A stretch of 63,784 bases of DNA, counting the filler, from Reticulomyxa filosa (Eukaryota; Protista; Foraminifera): NCBI GenBank assembly GCA_000512085.1. It is 20 parts of 20 records of this genome, joined end to end, with 100 filler letters (N's around TTAATTAATTAA, not from the genome) between each part and the next. Parts side by side here need not be neighbours in the genome. Positions count along the whole stretch, not along the records: positions 4,392 to 15,749 come from ASPP01014315.1; 19 more parts are not named here. The stretch is one strand, 5' to 3'. Within the stretch, counting starts at the first letter, position 1, and every line of letters starts with the position of its first letter. Under the pieces are notes generated by a model. That model was given only the letters and a program-made list of their open reading frames with translations, was not told where the DNA came from and ran no database searches. Shown in pieces: positions 4,392-16,199 of the stretch. Position numbers and translations under genes: made by a program.

Positions 4392-4406
4392 GGGGGGGGG
4401 AGGAGA

Positions 4407-7163
4407 TTGACATATGCACTTAACGTTGTTTGTAATGTTGCTTGGGATGACATAGCTTGCAAAAACGCATTTTTAAAGAGTTGGTGGAATCGGTTGGATA
4501 TGCTCGTGGTAATTGTGGCAGTCTTTGGTTTGATATTCCCCGAAGTCACGTTTTTACGTGGACTGCGAGCAATTCGACCCATTCGTGTCGCCATTCGAGT
4601 GAAACAAGTCGGGTTGTCGTTAAAGCTCTTATCCATTCCTTGGTCAATGTCTTCAATGGAGTGATGTTTGGCCTGCTTATTCTCTTTGTTTTGGCCATCA
4701 TTGGCACGCAATTGTTTTCAGGAGGCATGGGAAGGTATTAACTTTTTTTTTTTTTTATTTATTAAAGTAGTGAAGGAAATATGTCACATTACAAAAAAAA
4801 TATATATAAATATATACATACGTATACATATATTTATATATAAATATGTAACTTGCAAATGTTTTTTAAACAGATGTGTTGCGATTGGAGAACCATTTGT
4901 TCTACAAGATCCAAACCAATACCCCGACAAAGAGTCTTGTAAAAATGGCGTAGTGTGGGTTAACGCCGGATTTAATTTTGATAATGTGTTCAGCTCATTA
5001 TTGACAATTTTTAAAGTCACAAACTTTGCTCATTGGTTTGAAGAACTGTTACGTTTATTTATTATATACGCACGTACACATATATAAATATATACATATA
5101 TGTACATATATATACATATACATATATATATATGTATACGTATGTATATAAAATTGTGTTTTTTGATAACGTGTAATGCACATTGAAGAGCGTCAAGCAT
5201 GGCAACAGTGTCCGATTTTAAACAGGCAGTCCCGTTTCATCGCCCAGAGGCAGCAGTGTATTTTGTGTGTGTGGCATTGATCGGCGGATTTTTCCTGTGG
5301 AACATATTGGTCTCTGTCGTCGTGGACTCGTTCATGCGAATTAAGAAAGAAGAGGAAACCACTGGATTGGTGACGCAGGACCAAGCCATTTGGATCCAGA
5401 CGAGAAGATACGTCGAAAGGTTTCCCTTGCTCAATTCATTGAAAGAGCCACATGCAAAATGGAGACAGTTAATAACTACATTACTATTTGAAGAAGAAGA
5501 AGAAGAAGAAGAAGAAGCGTTCATATAAACTAATGTGAATATTTCATTTTTTTTTCCCCTTCTCTTCTTGAAATACTCAAATACGTATACAAACGTACAG
5601 AAAAGTATTTGCGTTAGTTACTAACGATTACTTTGAGTATTTCATTGTTGGCTGCATTGTCGTGAATGTGGTGTTCATGATGAGCTCGTATGAAAAGCAA
5701 CCGCAAAGTTGGGCGGTGACTCTTTGGGCAATTGATGTGGTATTTGTCACGATATATTGGATTGAAGCGATTTTGAAAATCGTAGGCCTAGGACTCCAAT
5801 ACTTCCAAAGTTGGTGGAACTTGTTTGACTTTGCAATCATCATTGCCTCGGTAGTAAGCATTGGACTGGGCTCACCTGGACAACACTACGCGGCTAATGG
5901 CATTCGATTGATTCGAGCCATTCGAATCGTGCGATTGCTTCGACGCGCGCCCGTTTTGCGAGCTCTTTTTATGACACTCATCTATGCCGCACCGTCCTTG
6001 CTCAATATCGGGCTCTTATTGTTCGTCGCATTCTTCATTTGGGGAATCTTTGGAATGGAATTATTTGGCACCGTCGTTCACAACGACGGATATGGAAATC
6101 ACATCCCCTATGGTTAGTACATACTTTTGTCAATAGCTAGTTTACTTATTTGTACATAACAAATAATAAGCCAATGATAATAAAAATAATAATATTAAAA
6201 AAAAAAAAAAAAAAAAACCAAGATAGCAACGATGGCATTAGCAAGTCGATCAATTTTGAATCGTTTGGTCACAGTTTGTTAGTGTTGTACCGAATTGCGA
6301 CAAATGATAATTGGGGATCAATCCTGCTGGCAACAGGTGCGGAAGGTGATCGCTGCCCTTCGAAACAGTATTTAACCAGATCGTCAGATAACGCCTTCAC
6401 ATATCATTGCGGAAATATGGGCTTGGCCATCACCTACTTTGTTTCATTCAGTATCTTTGGGACATTAGTCATGGTCAACTTGTTCATTGCCGTCATCTTG
6501 GACACTTATGTTGACAACATTGACTTTGAAAAGAGGATGGAAAAACTGGAAGTGGCCAAACAATGGGTTGAAAAATGGAAACTCAAAGACATTCAAGAAA
6601 ATGGCCATGTGCGAGGACGATTGGGAATTGCGACCTTTATTACGACTCTCAAAGTTTGAACCTACTTTTGTGTGTGTGTTGTTAGGTGTATATTATGACA
6701 TATTCAACACTCTGTTTTGATTGATTGGTTGTTCAAAAAGGAATCGCCGGTCTTGATCGGATTAATGATGGAGTCGTTGAATTTACGATTAAATATTGAC
6801 CAAAATCGCGAGGAGTCAGATGTGGATTATGATAATGTTGAATTGTTAAAGGAGAAATCTGTTCATATGTACGGAAGGGTCGATTTCGTGGGCGTGCCGA
6901 ATTCGGCGGATGCAAATGTGATTGTGACCAATGATCACATCAATGCTATATTAACATCTCGTCGATTACACTTGTTATGTCGATTGGTACACAGGGGCAC
7001 ATTGGAAGAGAAATTGGTCGTTTATTATGATGAGACATTGTTTGCAATCGCTTCGCTCATTGTTGGCCCAGAATTCCCAATGCTGTCCTATCATACAGAT
7101 AAACATGTCCATGTATCGGATTGGTGGCAGGAAAAATTGGAAGAAATCAGTCCTACTTTTTAA
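4407..7163 (+). CDS. Four-domain voltage-gated Ca2+/Na+ channel alpha subunit, domains III-IV and C-terminus (5' partial)
   Basis: S4 helices FLRGLRAIRPIRVAIR and IRLIRAIRIVRLLRR; SWWNRLD and SWWNLFDFAII; pore loops NFDNVFSSLLTIFKVTNFAHW and NFESFGHSLLVLYRIATNDNW; S6 MVNLFIAVILD; III-IV linker LVTQDQAIW. Introns 4735-4873, 5048-5188, 5468-5600, 6113-6222, 6654-6740; one indel near 4610; 5' exon boundary approximate. Confidence 0.92.
5490..5517 (+). repeat. (GAA)n microsatellite inside a channel intron
   Basis: gaagaagaa... lies between donor 5468 and acceptor 5600; it produces the spurious poly-E in the ORF track. Confidence 0.85.
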
Positions 7164-8037
7164 CAAGTATTGTCAATCTTGTTTTTTTTTTCCCCCTCCA
7201 TTTATCGGCAGATCAGCAACTTTGTCATATTTGCGCCTTGCAATATGTGCTATTCTTTTTGAAGTGTACATCGTCTTTTGTTTTGTTTTGTTGTTTGTTT
7301 TGCGTTTTTTTTTTTGAAACATTTTGTCCATCTTTCACAACAAATGTGTTTATTTCACTCCAAAACGTTTTCAAATTTTCAAACAGTACGTTTGTGTATA
7401 CTTGAGCTCTGGATTTTTGATTTGAAATTATTTCTTTTGTATTTGATATTCGACATAACATAAGTATTTATTGTTAAAAAAAAACAGCCCATAGATCACT
7501 TTCGACAGAATTTAGCATTATAATTTAGTACAAATGCTAGGTGTAAAAAAAAACATACTTGGAGAACGAACTAAGATGAGAAAACAGCGTAGATTATGTA
7601 AAAACTAGCGCACTGGCTTGCATTGCAAGAAATCAACAAATATAAAACAATGACTTGATAATCTCAGATCATATCAACTTCCTCAATTTTTGAGTATTTT
7701 TTTCATGTAATATTTCAGACAAATTGCACTATTATTTGAATAGGAGCAATAGATGACCCTGGACATGTCTTGTGTAGGAAAAAAAGCATGTTTATTGAAT
7801 TGAGAAAAGGTCAGGTTTTGTGGTATTTCTGCTAAAATAAATTCAAATATCTTTCTTTATTGGCGAATATACTGGGCCGAAATAGCATTTTTCTTGGCAA
7901 AGAATGTAACATTTGAACCTTTTGTTACAAAGAATAGGTTAGCCCTCAGTTTAAAAATAGAAAGTCGCAAAGTCAGTCTCGCTTTGACAAATTTAACTTT
8001 ATATACTCCAACTTTTCGATTATATCTCTGTACGCTT

Positions 8038-10378
8038 TCACAACACTCCCCACAATCGGATTGTTCCGTCTTTAGAAAATGACACAATTGTATTACCGTC
8101 TGGAGAAATATCCACTCCTATCAATTCTCTCAAGCTCCCTTCTAATTTTTGTATTTCAACTCCTAATTTTACATCCCACAATCGAAGTGTTTTGTCCAAT
8201 GAACATGATACAATGGTGTGAGCATCTGGAAAGAATTTCACATCTCTCACTGAACGTGAATGTTCTGTGAATGTTTCCACTTCTTTTCCTGTTGACGTAT
8301 CCCATATTCGGATTGTTTCATCAACCGAACAGGAAACAATAAAACATCCATCAGGAGAAAATTGCGCTTTGAATATATTGTCCTTATGTCCTTGGAATTG
8401 TTTTGTCCTCTCACCTAATATTACATCCCAAAGTGCAATTGTCATGTCATTTGAGGCAGACACAATTTGTCGGCCATTGGGTGAAAATTGGACTTCGTTG
8501 ATCGACATGGAATGTCCAATCATTCTTTTTATCTCTTGTCCAGATCTTACATCCCATAATCGAATAATTTTATCTTCTGCACTTGACACAATCGTCTTTC
8601 CATCGGGTGAAAACTGTGCACATATTACACAGCTAGAATTCGTTAATGTTTTGATCTCTGTCCACGATTTTACATCCCAAAGTCGAAGAGTTTTGTCGTT
8701 TGAACACGATACAATCATATTACCTTCCGGTGAAAATTGCGCATCATTAACAGCATCTGTATGTCCGTTCAGCACGTGGGTTTCTTTTCTCGATGCAATA
8801 GCACATACTCGAACTGTTTTATCTCCAAAAGAACAAACAACAGCCGTACTGTCAGGTGAAAATCTTACACTGTTTAAGTTGTTGGGAGATCGTTGAAGAA
8901 TTTTTAATGGTTTGAAATATTTCATCTGTCACACGTTCAAATTTTTGGCACATATAATTCAAAGCAAAAATGAAGCAAAGAACACAAATATATTTATTAC
9001 CAAAATATATCTCGAAACCATTGTAGTAATGTCATCAACCCATCTAATCTGGACTAAGGACGAGCGAAGCCAATGTTCAATTATTGTTTGAATTTCTTTC
9101 TTTTTCTTTTTTTTTTTTTTTTTTTTTAAAAAAAAGTATTTCAATATCACAGAATAAGTAAGCAAAGAAAAATTTCAATTTAACTTTTAAAAGTTTGCCA
9201 GAATTCTTTTTAATCTTTTTTAAATCTATCTTGATTTCTTCTATCCATCTAATTTCCTCTTCTTCTATAAACCACTCTTTCTCTTTTTCTGTCTCTTCTT
9301 TCATTAAATCTTCCACTTTCACTTTCATATGTGTTGTTAGCATTCTCTGTCCGGAATATCCTCCAATAATGTGTATATATGACTTATCTTCATCTACAAT
9401 GCCAATGCAATTATCCAATGGAATTGGTAAGGCTTGTTCAAGATGAAGCCATTTATTTGCTTCCATTGAATATCTGTGTATGTTGTCCGAAATGTCAAAT
9501 CCAGAATCAATGTTCCCACCAAAAAATAGGATGGTGTCATCGACACAAGCATATCCATAGCAAGAAAGTTGTCTAATGCTTGTACAAACTCGTACGTCCT
9601 CAAATTTGATTGTATTTCTTTTTTCATTGTACATAAGCAACAATCCCGTATCTTTGGAAAATAACATTAGCTCATACATATCTGCACTTGCATTCAATTT
9701 CGTGATTGGCAATTCCTTTTGCTTCTTTGATACGAAGCAATGATATCCCAATACAATACGAATTGGCAAAGTACTGCGCTTCACAACTTGAAATGTAGTT
9801 AAATCAATTATATCAAGATTATTTACAGGATAAGTAATAAACAATAAATGACTGCCACTGCCGCCAATTACTGCCCGAACTCCTTGATAATCATCTTCAT
9901 CTCTGCCAATAGTAATTGGCTTATTTTCATTGTTGGTGAAAGGAATCCATTGGTTACAAGGCTTTGTGCTGACATTTTCACGCTTAACCTCATCTACATC
10001 ATCCCAAACACTTGTATATCTCATTACCAATGTATGCTTTTTTTTATTGTCTGGCCCACCAAAAGATAACAATGTAATTCCGTTTGGATTGCTACTGTTG
10101 ATACGCTTTATCACACAATGCCCATTCAATTTAACATCATCTGGATAAGAGCAGATATACTTGTATTGATTTCGTAGTGAATGATAGGAATAACAATCTC
10201 TTTTAGAATTACCTCCACAAATGAGAATCTCTTGTTTATAGGATACACACTGAATACGATAATTTGGACTTGGCAAAGGAGCCAAAGACTCAAAGGGTGG
10301 CAAAATACACATGTCTGCCATCAGCTCAGCTATTGTGCCATCTAATTGTGTTGTGGTCGGAACCGACTGTGCTTGCAT
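8038..10378 (-). CDS. Kelch-like beta-propeller plus WD40-repeat protein (3 exons)
   Basis: Exon 10378-9185 has kelch-type GG motifs (ILICGG, LLSFGG, ILFFGG, IHIIGG). A 99-nt exon at 9099-9001 is followed by exon 8925-8038 with about 7 WD40 repeats (GH...FSPDG..IVSCS.DKT.RLWD). Confidence 0.85.
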
Positions 10379-10707
10379 TTATTCTATAAGGACAATGTGA
10401 TAGAGAGTTTAATTGATTAAACTCGACTAAAAAAAATTAGCCCGAACAATTCCCCAAGTTTTTTCCACGTTTCTTGTGGTTCACTGTTTTTTTTTAAGTT
10501 TTGTAAATTAGGAAAAAATTGTAAATATTTTTTAACTAAAATTAGGGCCGTAGTGTTGTTGTCTTGCAAATTTAAAATCTCTCCACATTACCATTTTTAA
10601 AAGTATCATTTCAAAAAAAAGACTTTTCAGTGTAACAAGGATGGTTGTAGTTCCAATCATCAAATTTAACAGCTTTTTTTTTATTTCAAAAAAAAAAAGT
10701 AATTTGT

Positions 10708-11942
10708 TTATATGTTGTATAAGTTGTGCCATCCCCAGACACGCAATGTCTCATCTCCTGAACATGTTACAATCATATCTCCACGTGCTGTGATATCTAC
10801 TCCTAGCACAAAATCAGAATGTCCTTCCAGTTTCTGAATTTCAACTCCTGATCTTATATCCCACAATCGAACTGTTCTGTCTTCAGAACATGAGACAAGA
10901 GTTTGACCATCAGGAAAATATTGTACATCTCTTACTGACTCAGTATGTGCATTGAATGTTTTTATCTCTTTCTCTGATTTTACATCCCATATGCGAATTG
11001 TGGTATCAGTTGAACAAGAAACAATGAAACAATCATCCAGAAAAAATTTTGCTTTCATTACAGAATCTGAATGTCCGGACAATCTCTTGACTATTTCATT
11101 TGACTTTACATCACATATGAAAATTAGTCTGCCAAATGATGCTGATACAATCATTTGCCCATCTGATGAAAGTTGAGAATTATATATCGCATCATGATAT
11201 TTTGCCAATGTTTTCATCTCTTTTCTAGATTTCACATCCCATATTCGAATAGTTTTGTCCCATGATGATATAATATTTCCATCAGGCAAAAATTGAGACC
11301 TTGATATTACGTTTGTGTGCCCTTCAAATCTTTTTATTTCATGTCCTGATTTTGTTTCCCATATCCGAATGGTTCTATCAGCTGATGATGATATAATAAG
11401 AGTTTCATCTGGTGAAAATTCTGCATCATTGACGGTATCTGAATGCCCTCTGAAAAGTTGAATTTCTTTTTCTGCTATAATATGTAACATTTGAATTGCT
11501 AAGCCACTTGTTATAAGGATTATATTATTATCATATTTTGAAATCCTTACACTTGTCACTGCGGATTGATATCCTCGTACAATTTTCAACAATGTAAAAA
11601 ATTTGGCCTATTTGAGTGTGGCTCGACAATACAAAATAATTCAAATATTACAAAAGCAGTATATTAACGTATTGTGCAACAATTTTATCAAAATCATTAA
11701 TCCATCCCAACTTGACATCCAGTACTCGAATCCAATTTTGGATAATTATTCTTATAATTTTTTCTATCTTTTTTAAATGTAGATGCAAAAATATATGTAC
11801 AATATACATATGTATATGTTATAAACCTATTTACAGAATGGCTTGTTGATTTTGCGTTTGTGTTTACCTCTGTGTCCTTTGTTCGTCCATCTAGCTTGGT
11901 CTTTTCTAAAGGAGTATCGTCAACATTTTCAGTTGTATTCAT
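10708..11942 (-). CDS. WD40-repeat protein (3 exons)
   Basis: Short disordered first exon, 99-nt exon 11767-11669 (IIIQNWIRVLDVKLGWINDFDKIVAQY), then about 7 WD40 repeats (GHSDTVNDAEFSPD...DRTIRIWE). Tandem paralogue of the neighbouring gene. Confidence 0.85.
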
Positions 11943-12208
11943 CACTGGCTTTTGTTTGTCAGAATATTGTCAATAACTGCAAATGATAATAATCTATCTC
12001 AAAAACATTGACTAACTCAAAGTTCAGGTCTCCTTTATTTTATGATATACGTATCAAAAATTCTGAAAAATATTTTACATTCTTTTATTTAATTTGACTT
12101 GAAAAATTTTTTTGATTGATTAAACGAAAAATTGTTGTGAGTAACAGAAACAAAAATGGAGCTGGCTCAAAGGGAAAGAAACTTCTTAGAATTTTGTACT
12201 GCTACGAA

Positions 12209-14744
12209 ATGTCCTTCAAAGCGTATTTAAATGAAGAAGCAAAAGCACATAAGATAATATTGACGGAATTGACGATTGAAAGTTTAAGACGTGAAATTAT
12301 CCAAGTTACAAAACTGGTACATGCAGACGACGTACTAACAACAATTACAAATAAGAATGGTCGCAATGTTGAAACTGACAGAGATGTGGTTGACGTGTTT
12401 AAAGATGACCCCGCCGTTTTTACTGTCCAATTTCAACAAAGTTTCTTTTTATTAAAAAAATTATTTTTCTTTGGTTAATGAATTTTGCTTTTTAGTTAAA
12501 ATGACCACATAATATAACAAATAGAAGAAATCACAGCAACATTACAAAGCAAAATAACATCAACCTATAAAATAAAATGTCCATTGGTGTTATTGACAGG
12601 AGCGATCAAACATGAGCAGTACCCAAACCTGGAAAATGTCAAACAAGATCTCATTTTATTGAAGACTCTATTTGAACAAAGATTTGGTTATCAAGTATTC
12701 AGTACATATGATCCACAAATTTCCACCACGGAATCTCTCACTGCGGATGAGCTAAGCAAATTAATTTTAACATATTGTTTGGATTTGGAAGATGCCACTG
12801 AGCACAACGACAAAAAAACCGCTTATGATGGTTTGATCTTTGTGTGGCGTGGATATGGAATATGCGGTACCAGTGAAAATACTTTGATCACAAGTGATAA
12901 CAGCATCAAACATTTCAAAGATATCCAAGATATTTTTATAAAGCAAATGCAATATTTTGTGGAAAAGCCAAAGATATTTATCATAATTGCAAACAAGATA
13001 CAAGACAAAACCAATCAAATCGCAGGCTATCAAGAATACGACAATACAAAAAACGACATATGGTACAATCAAGATGGAGATTTGTTCACATTGTTTGTAA
13101 CTACATCAGCGAAATTGAAAATTGAAAGTAGAGATTATTTTGTAGAGGCTTTTTGTCAGATCGCGGAGAGTAATGTCAATCAAGGTTTGGACTTTATCAT
13201 GAAACAGCTTATCAAGCTTGTCGGCAATCCAGTTTCAGATGGAGATGCCGTCCGACCTATTTCCAATATTCGTTCTGATATCTTTTTAAGTGTGAGGTCA
13301 AGTAATTATCAAATGCAAAATTATGATTGTGATAACGATGAGGATGAAATCAAGCACGACATATCCACAAGTATGGACAATAAAATTCCGGAAATATTGG
13401 ACTTCAAATATCACTGGAACAAAAATTGGAGACAAGCAAATGCTGAAGCTGTGAAAATAGTTGAACATATGATACATGCAAATGAACAAGGATTGATTAT
13501 TGTTGCCTGCAATGCCTCTGAATGGAAACATATGGATAATAATTCTTCTTTATTCATTTCATTAATAAACAAGGAGGAAATGAAAAAAGAAATATTTGGG
13601 GATTATTGTTTGTATGTGGTTAAAAAAGAATTAATAATAGTCGATGAAGTAAAGATTGATGGAAATGTATATGCTATTGATTGTGAAATTCAATGGAAAG
13701 GAAATGTAAATATTACAGCACAGTTATTTGTTACAAAGAAGGTTACAATGAATCAGCAATTAAAACAATCTATTTCATCGATTCAATGGAATACTAAAAT
13801 ACATCATGATATTCCAGTACGACTTTATGGTCTAGAATATAAAGAAGAACAATGTTTAGAAAAAAAATGTTTTGACGATGCAATTGTTCATTTGCAAGAG
13901 CATTTGCAACTTTCAACTAATGCTTTCGGTTTAAATAATCCTTATGCAGCAATTGCATACAACAAAATCGGATGTGCATATGACGATAAAGGCGATTATG
14001 ACAAAGCAATCGAATTTTACGAAAAAGCTTTGAAAGTTATATTTGAAATGTTCGGATATAATTACAATATTGTTGCACAATTGTATTATAATCTTGGAAT
14101 TACTTATAAAAATAAAAAGAATTATGACAAAGCGATGGAATGTTATAAAAAATCTTTGGATATCAGAACAAGCATTTTTGGATCCAAAAATTCTCAAATT
14201 GCCGATTCGTACAGTAGTTTAGGGAATATATTTTTTAAGCAACAACAGAATGAAAAAGCAATAGAACATTACAACAAATCATTGGAAATCAGATTAAATA
14301 TTTTTGGATTTAATCACAGTGATGTCGCTTGGCTATATTATAAATTAGGAAAAGTGTATAGTAGAGAAGGACAAGACGATAAAGCAATTGATTGCTATAA
14401 TAATTCATTGCAAATTCGAATACATTTATTTGGAACAAACAATAACGACGTTATTAACTCATATCATAGCTTAGGATATGTCTATGTTAGCATAGGAGAA
14501 TGTAAACAAGCAATTGATTGTTATGAAAAGGAATTGAAGATAAAAAGAGAAATATTTGGAAATAAAAGTAAAGAAGTCGGAGATTCTTGTCGCCATTTAG
14601 GAAATATATTTAAAGTAATAGGAAAAAAGAAAATAGCATATAAATATTTTAAAGAGTCTTGGATGGTATACAGTATTGCACTAGGAGAATGGAACAAAAT
14701 AACTATGAACGCAAAAAAAAAAGATTAAGACATTGCATAAATGA
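12209..14744 (+). CDS. PB1-like domain + caspase-like (peptidase C14 fold, catalytic dyad substituted) + TPR-repeat protein
   Basis: Exon 12209-12440, intron 12441-12524, long exon 2. Caspase-fold motifs PLVLLTGAIKHEQYPNLENVKQDLILLKTLFEQRFGYQV, YDGLIFVWRGYG, KPKIFIIIANK. About 7 TPRs of 42 aa (AYNKIGCAYDDKGDYDKAIEFYEKAL). Stop at 14728 as assembled, or ~14744 if the A-run is one base too long. Confidence 0.85.
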
Positions 14745-16199
14745 TATTGTGACAATTTTATAATTTGTTATAAGTTTTCACGATCAGAAGTCACAAGTAA
14801 TCTACTTCATACATTTGTATTTTCAAATATTAAACTGATAAAACAGCGCATCAATACAAGCGATGCAGTTTCTTTTTGATATTCGCTAATATAACCTTTC
14901 AAACTATGTCTAGTATAATTTTTTGAAAATAATGTTTTATATAATCAACCTAAAAAAGAAAGAATAAGATTTAGTTCGATCTTTTTGCCTTTTGAAAAAT
15001 GAAAATTTATTTGGAAAAATATTACTTTTAATTACAAAATACATAGCATCAATCAATCTGGACCTGATCCAATGATATCACAACTGGAACAGGTTGTTCT
15101 ATTTTAAAGTGAATTGGGATTTTACATTTGATCAATTCACCTTCGATAAGTTTTATAGTTGGTATAACTTGCCAATATGATTGTGCTTTTATTTTTTGAA
15201 TATTTACTTGAGTGTATAACAACAGCAATACGATTGTGTCAATCAGTTATTGCACCAAAACGAATATGACACTAACATCTTAAACTAAATACTTGTATCC
15301 ATATGATAAATCTGTTGCAGCATAACCATTTAGTCTATCTTTATTTTTATTTTATATGTCAATCAAAAAACACTTTGCATGTACATATACACATTTATAC
15401 ATGCATATATGCATGCTCATTAAAACGTACAAACATATATCATGTATGTCACTTTGGACGAAATGTACGCTACAAAGTTATTATATTGTTCCCAGATGCA
15501 TTCATGTCATAGTGCTTATGATAAATCACCGATTTGCAATATCAATAATAAATTTGGCCAAATTCTATGCTAAATGCGAATACTAGAAGTTGATTTGTTA
15601 GAATTGCCTTTGTTAGTGCCTCACAATTTTCATCTTTTTATAGTAGAAAACCCAACTAATACAAGTGTCTTTTATACTTTGTTATTGATATTTCTTGTTT
15701 ACTAAATACAGTAGATTGCAAAAAAAACTGCCATATCTAAATGGCACTANNNNNNNNNNNNNNNNNNNNNNNNNNNNNNNNNNNNNNNNNNNNTTAATTA
15801 ATTAANNNNNNNNNNNNNNNNNNNNNNNNNNNNNNNNNNNNNNNNNNNNCCATTTTCCATTCCATAACATACACACTTTTGGTGGAATAAAATGTCTTGT
15901 TCTATATCTATTTAAAATGATTTATTATATCATTTATATATTTATATATTTATATCATTTGTTTTATTAACAACAAAATAGATACATACATGATTCCACC
16001 ATTAATAATATTTCCACAGATGTAATAATTTAATATGTGATATTGATAATATTTTGTCATCATATCAATAATATTGCAACTGATTTTACTTTTTATTTTG
16101 ATCACTTTGTATTAATTTTTTCTTAGAACTAGTTTTAGACATTTCAAAATTATTTTTGCATTTTCTTCAAAATTTTGATTTCTTATAATATATTTTATT

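Follow-up and report, generated by a model that had tools for sequence, protein, structure and literature searches.

A window of 63,784 nucleotides from the genome of Reticulomyxa filosa, and more precisely its piece at positions 4392-15749 (ASPP01014315.1), carries the gene RFI_18387, whose public model (P0001) comprises 822 amino acids. On balance, and with modest confidence, we read its product as a selected, non-proteolytic homologue of the caspases with a cFLIP-like role in assembly or regulation. An initial annotation had described the gene as a pseudo-caspase coupled to a PB1-like head and a tetratricopeptide repeat (TPR) array. RFI_18387 belongs to a set of over 100 representative R. 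filosa paralogues that consist of a head, a caspase-like domain or none, a middle domain and a TPR array.

The caspase-like domain

The assignment of RFI_18387 to the caspases is based on its paralogues, some of which pass the Pfam family PF00656, and on a modelled fold that matches caspases, not on a Pfam match of its own. Specifically, PF00656 gave no match to RFI_18387 even at E<=10, either with the whole protein or with isolated N-terminal parts, and a phmmer search with the single sequence against PDB sequences also found none. A word-based protein search retrieved 17 R. filosa paralogues of 35-46% identity, and in a Pfam scan of ten paralogues PF00656 is passed by P0004, P0007, P0016 and P0018 (E 1e-8 to 6e-19). 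In addition, a profile of 18 paralogous domains matches caspase-3 (E 8e-4). In this alignment the family stretch s-y-f-t-e-i-F-c-q stands opposite the p10 motif G-S-W-F-I-Q-S-L-C-A, to which the corresponding motif of RFI_18387 is homologous; the p10-like motifs quoted in the initial annotation are present in the sequence.

Structure comparison leads to the same family. An AlphaFold2 model of residues 1-400 was built with a paralogue alignment (mean predicted local distance difference test score, pLDDT, 67; core 70-90), the AlphaFold models of this work being based on shallow alignments of 16-18 paralogues. The caspase order of strands and helices spans residues 108-335 of this model. When it is compared with the PDB by Foldseek, the top-ranked structures are caspases and c-FLIP (Dronc, caspase-11, -9 and -1), with E from 3e-9 upwards and probability 1.0, and MALT1 follows lower, from rank 27. 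VIA-align, applied to model residues 97-347, gives animal caspases or c-FLIP in each of its 50 top rows, and the leading targets score Z 22-23, with a root-mean-square deviation (rmsd) of 2.3-3.1 Å over 190-209 residues. These are procaspase-8 (Z 22.9; rmsd 2.3 Å over 191 aligned residues), caspase-9 (Z 22.9), CED-3 (Z 22.2), caspase-7 (Z 22.0) and c-FLIP (Z 21.7; rmsd 2.6 Å over 193 residues), the last with 21% identity, the highest among the top hits. In other words, RFI_18387 is predicted to contain a complete C14A-type caspase fold with both p20 and p10 parts, at residues 100-345 (12557-13294, plus strand), in agreement with the initial annotation. The lack of any caspase-fold match for this region, which the annotation had named as counter-evidence, is contradicted by Foldseek and VIA-align alike.

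The catalytic site and the substrate groove

Both residues of the catalytic dyad are replaced in RFI_18387. Direct reading of the plus strand gives V-W-R-G-Y-G, in which the TAT codon at 12854-12856 encodes Tyr199 at the position of the catalytic His, and K-P-K-I-F-I-I-I-A-N-K, in which the AAC codon at 12992-12994 encodes Asn245 at the position of the catalytic Cys; both lie in the frame of the open reading frame (ORF). Where RFI_18387 has G-Y-G, its paralogue P0016 (RFI_27043) has G-H-G, as do the outgroup relatives, and where RFI_18387 has I-A-N-K, P0016 has N-A-C-R-G (alignment A1). Moreover, when the family stretch K-P-K-i-F-i-k-i-a-Y is aligned with G-K-P-K-L-F-I-I-Q-A-C-R-G of caspase-3, Asn245 corresponds to Cys163 and Ile243 to Gln161 of the S1 pocket. 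The double replacement reported at the outset is thus recovered from the sequence, from the alignment with P0016 and the outgroup, from the caspase-3 profile and from the census of dyad states given below. The replacements would fit an A+T-rich genome in which constraint has been lifted, and the AAC codon of Asn is one step away from TAC, which encodes Tyr.

The substrate-binding region appears to have changed as well. In the S1 pocket for Asp, formed by Arg, Gln and Arg, the Gln has become Ile243, and the loop that bears the second Arg is shortened and variable in length. In particular, this loop between strand 5 and helix 4 (L3 of caspases, part of the substrate groove) measures 7-21 residues among the paralogues, and it is short and poorly modelled in RFI_18387. 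The conserved residues, in turn, are those of the central sheet, of the hairpin after the His loop and of the C-terminal strand. Taken with the variable length of L3, this distribution suggests that the fold, and perhaps a dimer interface, has been conserved, and would argue against a conserved peptide-binding groove.

A possibility is that RFI_18387 still works as a protease, and that unconventional residues close to the former active site have taken over as nucleophile or base. The strands that bear the active site are in fact strongly conserved, D-x-L-I-F-V-W-x-G and K-P-K-x-F being invariant in the family alignment, and in most members a Cys precedes the His position by two residues. In RFI_18387, however, that Cys is an Arg, in addition to the Tyr and the Asn at the dyad positions. 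Across the family at least 10 residues (Y, W, N, T, H, E, S, F, I and C) occupy the Cys position next to the invariant K-P-K-x-F, a variability that would suit a site with no chemical role any longer. The loss of the S1 Gln and the unequal L3 loops also speak against proteolysis, which we consider very improbable.

Dyad states across the family

The census of dyad states covers aligned representatives of the RFI_18387 family and relatives. His and Cys are both present (H/C) in 25 of them, followed by Y/Y in 15, H/Y in 13, Y/C in five, Y/W in three and Y/N in two, namely RFI_18387 and P0029; each of the other states, with N, G, T, H, E, S, F or I, was seen once. Among R. filosa paralogues of the same architecture as RFI_18387, His and Cys are kept by P0016, P0034, P0038, P0041, P0057, P0079 and P0082.

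The dyad states were also placed on a quick maximum-likelihood tree of 64 domains, which is poorly resolved inside the R. filosa clade. Metagenomic proteins and proteins named 'caspase 8-like' make up an almost wholly H/C group, with P0153 (H/Y) as the sole exception. The R. filosa clade characterised by V-W-C-G contains 48 rows, with a Shimodaira-Hasegawa-like approximate likelihood ratio test (SH-aLRT) support of 96, and divides into a group of seven rows, which includes P0016, and a group of 41 (SH-aLRT 95). RFI_18387 falls within the latter, beside P0004 (Y/Y), with weak support (SH-aLRT 86). The initial annotation had pointed to the dyad status of the paralogues as informative, and in this subclade only two of the 41, P0034 and P0038, keep both His and Cys. 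Dyad loss thus appears to be the rule in the family of RFI_18387. Parsimony counts 10-13 changes per dyad site, of which the well-supported branches force only about 3-4, and the number of independent losses is not inferable from these counts.

Open reading frame and selection

The ORF at 12584-14728 (plus strand) represents the main exon of RFI_18387, with 100% identity to P0001, and ends with the stop codon at 14726-14728. Counted from the preceding stop, 736 codons are free of stops, and 714 when counted from the first TTG; at the local base composition (31% G+C) a frame of this length would arise by chance with a probability of about 10^-29.5. On the same strand, 51 and 72 stops interrupt the other two frames.

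Ratios of nonsynonymous to synonymous divergence (dN/dS) were estimated by the Nei-Gojobori method on codon alignments taken from the genomic loci. For the caspase domain of RFI_18387 the ratio is 0.27 against P0004 and 0.21 against P0005, with a synonymous divergence (dS) of about 1.6 in both cases, which is near saturation. The head gives 0.13 against P0004, and comparisons with P0004 and P0005 give 0.24-0.30 for the TPR array and 0.42-0.57 for the middle domain; the linker between caspase and middle domains reaches 0.83-0.92 against P0004 and P0016. Because dS is near saturation for RFI_18387, a less diverged trio of paralogues was used at the level of the family, consisting of P0016 (H/C), P0039 (H/Y) and P0036 (Y/Y). 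Here dS is 0.4-0.57 and the caspase domain, with dN/dS of 0.26-0.36, is the most constrained part of the protein; between P0039 and P0036, both of which are dead, the ratio is 0.26, with dS within the same range. Differences by codon position follow the order second < first < third.

These values indicate that the dead caspase domains are under purifying selection while the linkers evolve almost neutrally. Together with the ORF statistics, they reject neutral decay for the family and, less precisely, for RFI_18387 too. Neutral evolution, the other outcome named beforehand as refuting, is contradicted by the distance between the ratios of the caspase domain (0.21-0.36) and of the linker (0.83-0.92), and the proposal that an ORF of more than 700 codons is retained rather than decaying finds support in its 736 open codons and in domain ratios of about 0.2-0.36.

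The same data bear on the idea that RFI_18387 is a decaying pseudogene or an annotation artefact devoid of function. What could be said for it is that Pfam does not recognise the caspase domain, that the catalytic residues are lost and that the public model probably includes some intronic sequence. A pseudogene, on the other hand, would hardly keep such a long frame at 31% G+C when the other frames hold 51 and 72 stops, nor ratios of 0.2-0.3 in the domains against about 0.9 in the linkers, and all four domains are intact and confidently modelled. We regard this idea as next to negligible; it is ruled out by the length of the ORF and by the codon-position pattern.

The gene model

Exon 1 begins with the ATG at 12209 and extends to 12440 on the plus strand; it encodes the head (residues 1-77) and maps to P0001 residues 1-88. 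It is followed by a probable intron of 84 nucleotides at 12441-12524 (GT...AG, phase 1), recognised by comparison with the donors of paralogues. In the public model exon 1 continues to 12473 and is spliced at 12473|12525, so that 33 nucleotides (12441-12473) are translated as an insert rich in Phe and Leu. The homologous intron of four paralogues has a phase-1 donor directly after the head (A|GTTTTG in three cases, A|GTAACA in the fourth); at 12440|12441 the window offers the candidate donor A|GTTTCT. Most paralogues lack the 11 Phe- and Leu-rich residues that separate this donor from that of the public model, and in the AlphaFold2 model these residues have a pLDDT of about 40. The intron is probably 12441-12524, which would give a product of 811 amino acids, and the public model would include a part of it. 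Comparable inserts rich in Phe and Leu are seen in the models of P0003 and P0009.

Another gene model of the family is affected in a different way. Just upstream of RFI_07370 (P0005) lies a gene call of 125 amino acids (L002:1301-1830) that corresponds to a PB1-like head (E 1.9e-33 to the head profile). Since this separate call encodes its head, the public model of RFI_07370 is split in two.

The head, the middle domain and the TPR array

In the AlphaFold2 model the head folds as strand-strand-helix-strand-helix-strand, with a pLDDT of about 90, and ESM Atlas's own model of this stretch superposes on PB1-containing proteins (NBR1-like, NLP, PB1-TPR) with template modelling (TM) scores of 0.69-0.77. 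It is a beta-grasp and not the six-helix death fold of a death effector domain (DED), as both AlphaFold2 and ESM Atlas indicate. GRHL1_C, TDP-43_N, PB1, CIDE-N and Par3-N are ubiquitin-like domains, several of which self-associate. In a feature search of ESM Atlas with the head, these domains and ANKRD40_UBL score similarly, all of them below the level at which a match is more than a lead. In terms of sequence, a profile of 14 heads matches two solved structures of the Bem1 PB1 domain with E 0.0014-0.002 over 58 of 82 positions. The strand-1 Lys that characterises type B PB1 domains is present as Lys4 in RFI_18387 and occurs in eight of the 14 aligned heads, the others having E, N or R. A stretch D-x-x-G-x-x-I-x-T-D resembles that of Bem1, and RFI_18387 has neither an acidic cluster there nor a clear acidic OPCA motif, the mark of type A. 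The term 'PB1-like' is therefore fair for the fold and borderline for the sequence; the head described in the initial annotation stands in the sense that its closest matches, by structure and by sequence (Bem1 PB1, E 0.0014), are PB1 domains.

A conserved middle domain that the initial annotation did not contain separates the caspase-like domain from the TPRs; it was delimited by alignment and by the AlphaFold2 model (residues 376-551, about 170 residues; 13385-13912, plus strand). It starts with a long helix, after which come about eight beta strands, with a core pLDDT of 87-93, and its alignment (A2) has a mean column identity of 45%. No significant fold match was found with Foldseek against the PDB (E>0.6), with VIA-align (best Z 4.8) or with ESM Atlas by shape and features (TM<0.45). 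As a lead only, several of the weak matches (Z 3-4) to residues 59-135 of the domain model are of the beta-helix type, namely LpxA, GlmU, IcsA, TibA and a tail fibre. The same domain occurs in many R. filosa proteins that have no caspase domain.

The C-terminal array, at 13868-14704 (plus strand), comprises six to seven units of 42 residues of the TPR_12/TPR_10 type. Pfam TPR_12 (PF13424) matches it with E 7.5e-48, at 161 bits against a cut-off of 30.1, and TPR_1, TPR_2, TPR_8 and TPR_10 match as well, which confirms the TPR array first described. TPR families are the only ones that Pfam reports for RFI_18387.

Architectures and taxonomic range of the family

A profile of head, caspase and middle domains was searched against 1.84 billion representative proteins and retrieved 466 at E<=1e-3, 118 of them at E<=1e-30. 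The order of domains was established with one hidden Markov model per domain, run on the best 150 of the 466 matches and on cluster members fetched later. Among the matches listed, the commonest orders are as follows: 34 representatives are head-caspase-middle, 31 caspase only, 29 middle only, 27 head-middle, 18 head-caspase (including the intact 'caspase 8-like' P0143) and 11 caspase-middle. Many of the shorter orders stem from truncated gene models. The head-middle class is nevertheless real: the genes of P0046 and P0059 (L006:1927-3512 and L007:2001-3596), both head-middle-TPR, span only 122 and 84 nucleotides more than their coding length, too little to conceal a caspase exon; these two genuinely lack the caspase domain, and mis-splicing does not account for its absence.

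Taxonomic range was judged from 30 proteins that were looked up. All 22 with a head or a middle domain are from R. filosa. The 'caspase only' relatives that were looked up come from metagenomic contigs (P0117, P0122-P0126, P0132, P0133 and P0148) and all keep His and Cys; it is also on such contigs that the caspase domain has its closest relatives beyond R. filosa. In a scan of ten metagenomic relatives, fusions to ankyrin, WD40, NACHT or TPR were present in several, and others had no second domain. More distant, dyad-intact caspases of R. filosa, such as P0143, carry the head directly before the caspase domain, and the head is therefore the general prodomain of R. filosa caspases. As to how the family grew, P0008 (RFI_05612) and P0055 (RFI_05613) are adjacent on the same contig of 14,990 bp, which suggests expansion by tandem duplication.

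A model for the function of RFI_18387

Paralogues that retain the dyad occur in the same genome as many in which it is dead and many that have no caspase domain. The cFLIP-like role that we favour could work as follows. The head would act as the homotypic recruitment domain of Reticulomyxa caspases, the counterpart of the CARD and DED domains of animals. The module of TPRs and middle domain would bind a ligand or a partner and drive assembly, and the dead caspase domain would serve as a dimerisation partner or scaffold that does not cut. In mixed oligomers, the dead domain might then modulate the few active paralogues, as cFLIP-L does.

Several observations weigh against this model. The Pfam PB1 family (PF00564) is unmatched in the head of RFI_18387 and in the scanned paralogues, and membership of the PB1 family is borderline by sequence (E about 1e-3). 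The dN/dS of RFI_18387 itself is rough, its dS to the nearest paralogues being near saturation. The ratio of dead to active copies in its subclade, about 39 to 2, fits poorly with a pure one-to-one regulator. This excess suggests an independent function of the dead domain, and somewhat favours an explanation of a different kind.

According to this main rival, the family would resemble the NLRs, that is, it would consist of diversifying TPR-based receptors engaged in immunity, self/non-self recognition or the control of symbionts. Their caspase-like domains would serve either as integrated decoys or as structural spacers, and signalling would pass through the middle domain or the head without an active caspase. 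The very large size of the family, with 466 representatives at E<=1e-3, and its confinement to R. filosa among the looked-up proteins with a head or middle domain agree with this, as do the tandem arrangement of some members (RFI_05612 and RFI_05613, on one contig) and the predominance of dead copies over live ones. Furthermore, the caspase domain is dispensable, as the 27 head-middle representatives among the matches listed testify, and the intact metagenomic relatives fused to ankyrin, WD40, NACHT or TPR display the usual layout of effector and sensor. Against the receptor reading stands the constraint on the dead caspase domain, which is the most constrained part of the protein and not a drifting spacer; pairwise dN/dS of the TPRs is also low (0.24-0.45). 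There is, in addition, no NTPase switch: RFI_18387 shows no match to NACHT, NB-ARC or another NTPase family in Pfam, no Walker A motif and no NTPase-like fold match of its middle domain. This rules out the reading in its strict form, as a STAND (signal transduction ATPase with numerous domains) or NLR protein; in the broader form we find it doubtful, although it deserves serious attention.

The cFLIP-like model can also be extended to the whole family. Reticulomyxa may have built its own platform for caspase activation, independent of death folds, in which the PB1-like head would recruit all its caspases, the middle domain and TPRs would sense and assemble, and paralogues that are active, half-dead (with either His or Cys kept), fully dead like RFI_18387, or caspase-less would tune the output. 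This would be convergent with the death-inducing signalling complex (DISC), the apoptosome and the pair cFLIP-L/cFLIP-S of animals. We put forward this wider scenario as a speculation, and an unlikely one as it stands.

Neighbouring genes

Upstream of RFI_18387, on the opposite strand, two ORFs of the seven-blade WD40 type, at 8038-8925 and 10708-11592 (both minus strand; 45% mutual identity), flank a Kelch-repeat ORF at 9077-10378 (minus strand). The nearer WD40 gene is divergent with respect to RFI_18387, with about 260-600 nucleotides between the starts. At 4392-7163 (plus strand) several exons belong to a gene for an Ion_trans-type cation channel, voltage-gated-like or polycystin-like, which is interrupted by the left edge of the piece. 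Elsewhere in the genome, adjoining the paralogue RFI_12347 (L003:5420-8122, minus strand), a gene product matches both the HSP70 and the PARP catalytic families, an unusual pairing.

Comparison with known systems

To our knowledge, animal-type caspases are almost unknown outside Metazoa. That most caspase-like proteins of R. filosa prove to be selected pseudo-enzymes, set in a frame of head, caspase or none, middle domain and TPRs, changes how their place as the usual outgroup of the metazoan tree is to be read. The series from active to half-dead, dead and absent caspase domains offers natural material for studying what a caspase fold that does not cut can do, and the family suggests that regulated caspase assembly may rely on a PB1-like domain instead of CARD or DED. 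It also yields a conserved domain of 170 residues without a recognisable fold.

As the initial annotation stated, caspase-like genes had been noted in Reticulomyxa before: their products cluster with animal caspases (Klim et al. 2018, PMC5982838) and form the outgroup in metazoan caspase trees (PMC10959488). The catalytic residues, TPRs and domain architecture of R. filosa caspases are unmentioned in PMC5982838, and RFI_18387 is unlikely to be part of the Pfam-based R. filosa sets of these two studies, because it does not pass PF00656. The searchable literature contains no description of the architecture of head, caspase, middle domain and TPRs or of the family, in keeping with the view first expressed that this architecture was uncharacterised. 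Pseudo-caspases are known as a kind; neither this architecture nor a family on this scale seems to have been described.

Among the known kinds, bacterial pseudo-orthocaspases occur as YS, YN and FS variants, the FS variants being fused to TPRs (Klemencic et al. 2019, PMC6426788). They resemble RFI_18387 in that they are of the p20 type and have Tyr or Phe at the His position and Ser or Asn at the Cys position, and the YN variant has the same pair of residues. They differ in being prokaryotic and without p10, whereas RFI_18387 has p20 and p10 and is closest to animal caspases, and their additional domains and domain order are not those of RFI_18387, namely head, caspase, middle and TPR. PB1 domains of the Bem1, p62/NBR1 and Par6 type, for their part, share with the head the beta-grasp topology, the size and, for RFI_18387 and eight of the 14 aligned heads, the strand-1 Lys, with Bem1 PB1 as the best sequence match in the PDB; the head departs from them in having no PF00564 match and no clear acidic OPCA motif, and other beta-grasp families score similarly.

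The closest parallel is c-FLIP. In this protein Arg and Tyr replace the catalytic His and Cys (Y360), and its function is exerted by heterodimerisation with caspase-8 (PMC7586951). It has tandem DEDs where RFI_18387 has a PB1-like beta-grasp head, and it is without the C-terminal middle domain and TPR array; its His has become Arg, in contrast to the Tyr of RFI_18387. Humans have a single dead copy and R. filosa has many. The long form of c-FLIP (CFLAR) nevertheless shares with RFI_18387 a complete caspase fold in which both dyad residues are replaced, and the change from Cys to Tyr, the commonest in the R. filosa family, is the one found in cFLIP too. In both cases, moreover, active paralogues are encoded in the same genome, and the short relatives of RFI_18387 without a caspase domain are comparable to FLIP-S.

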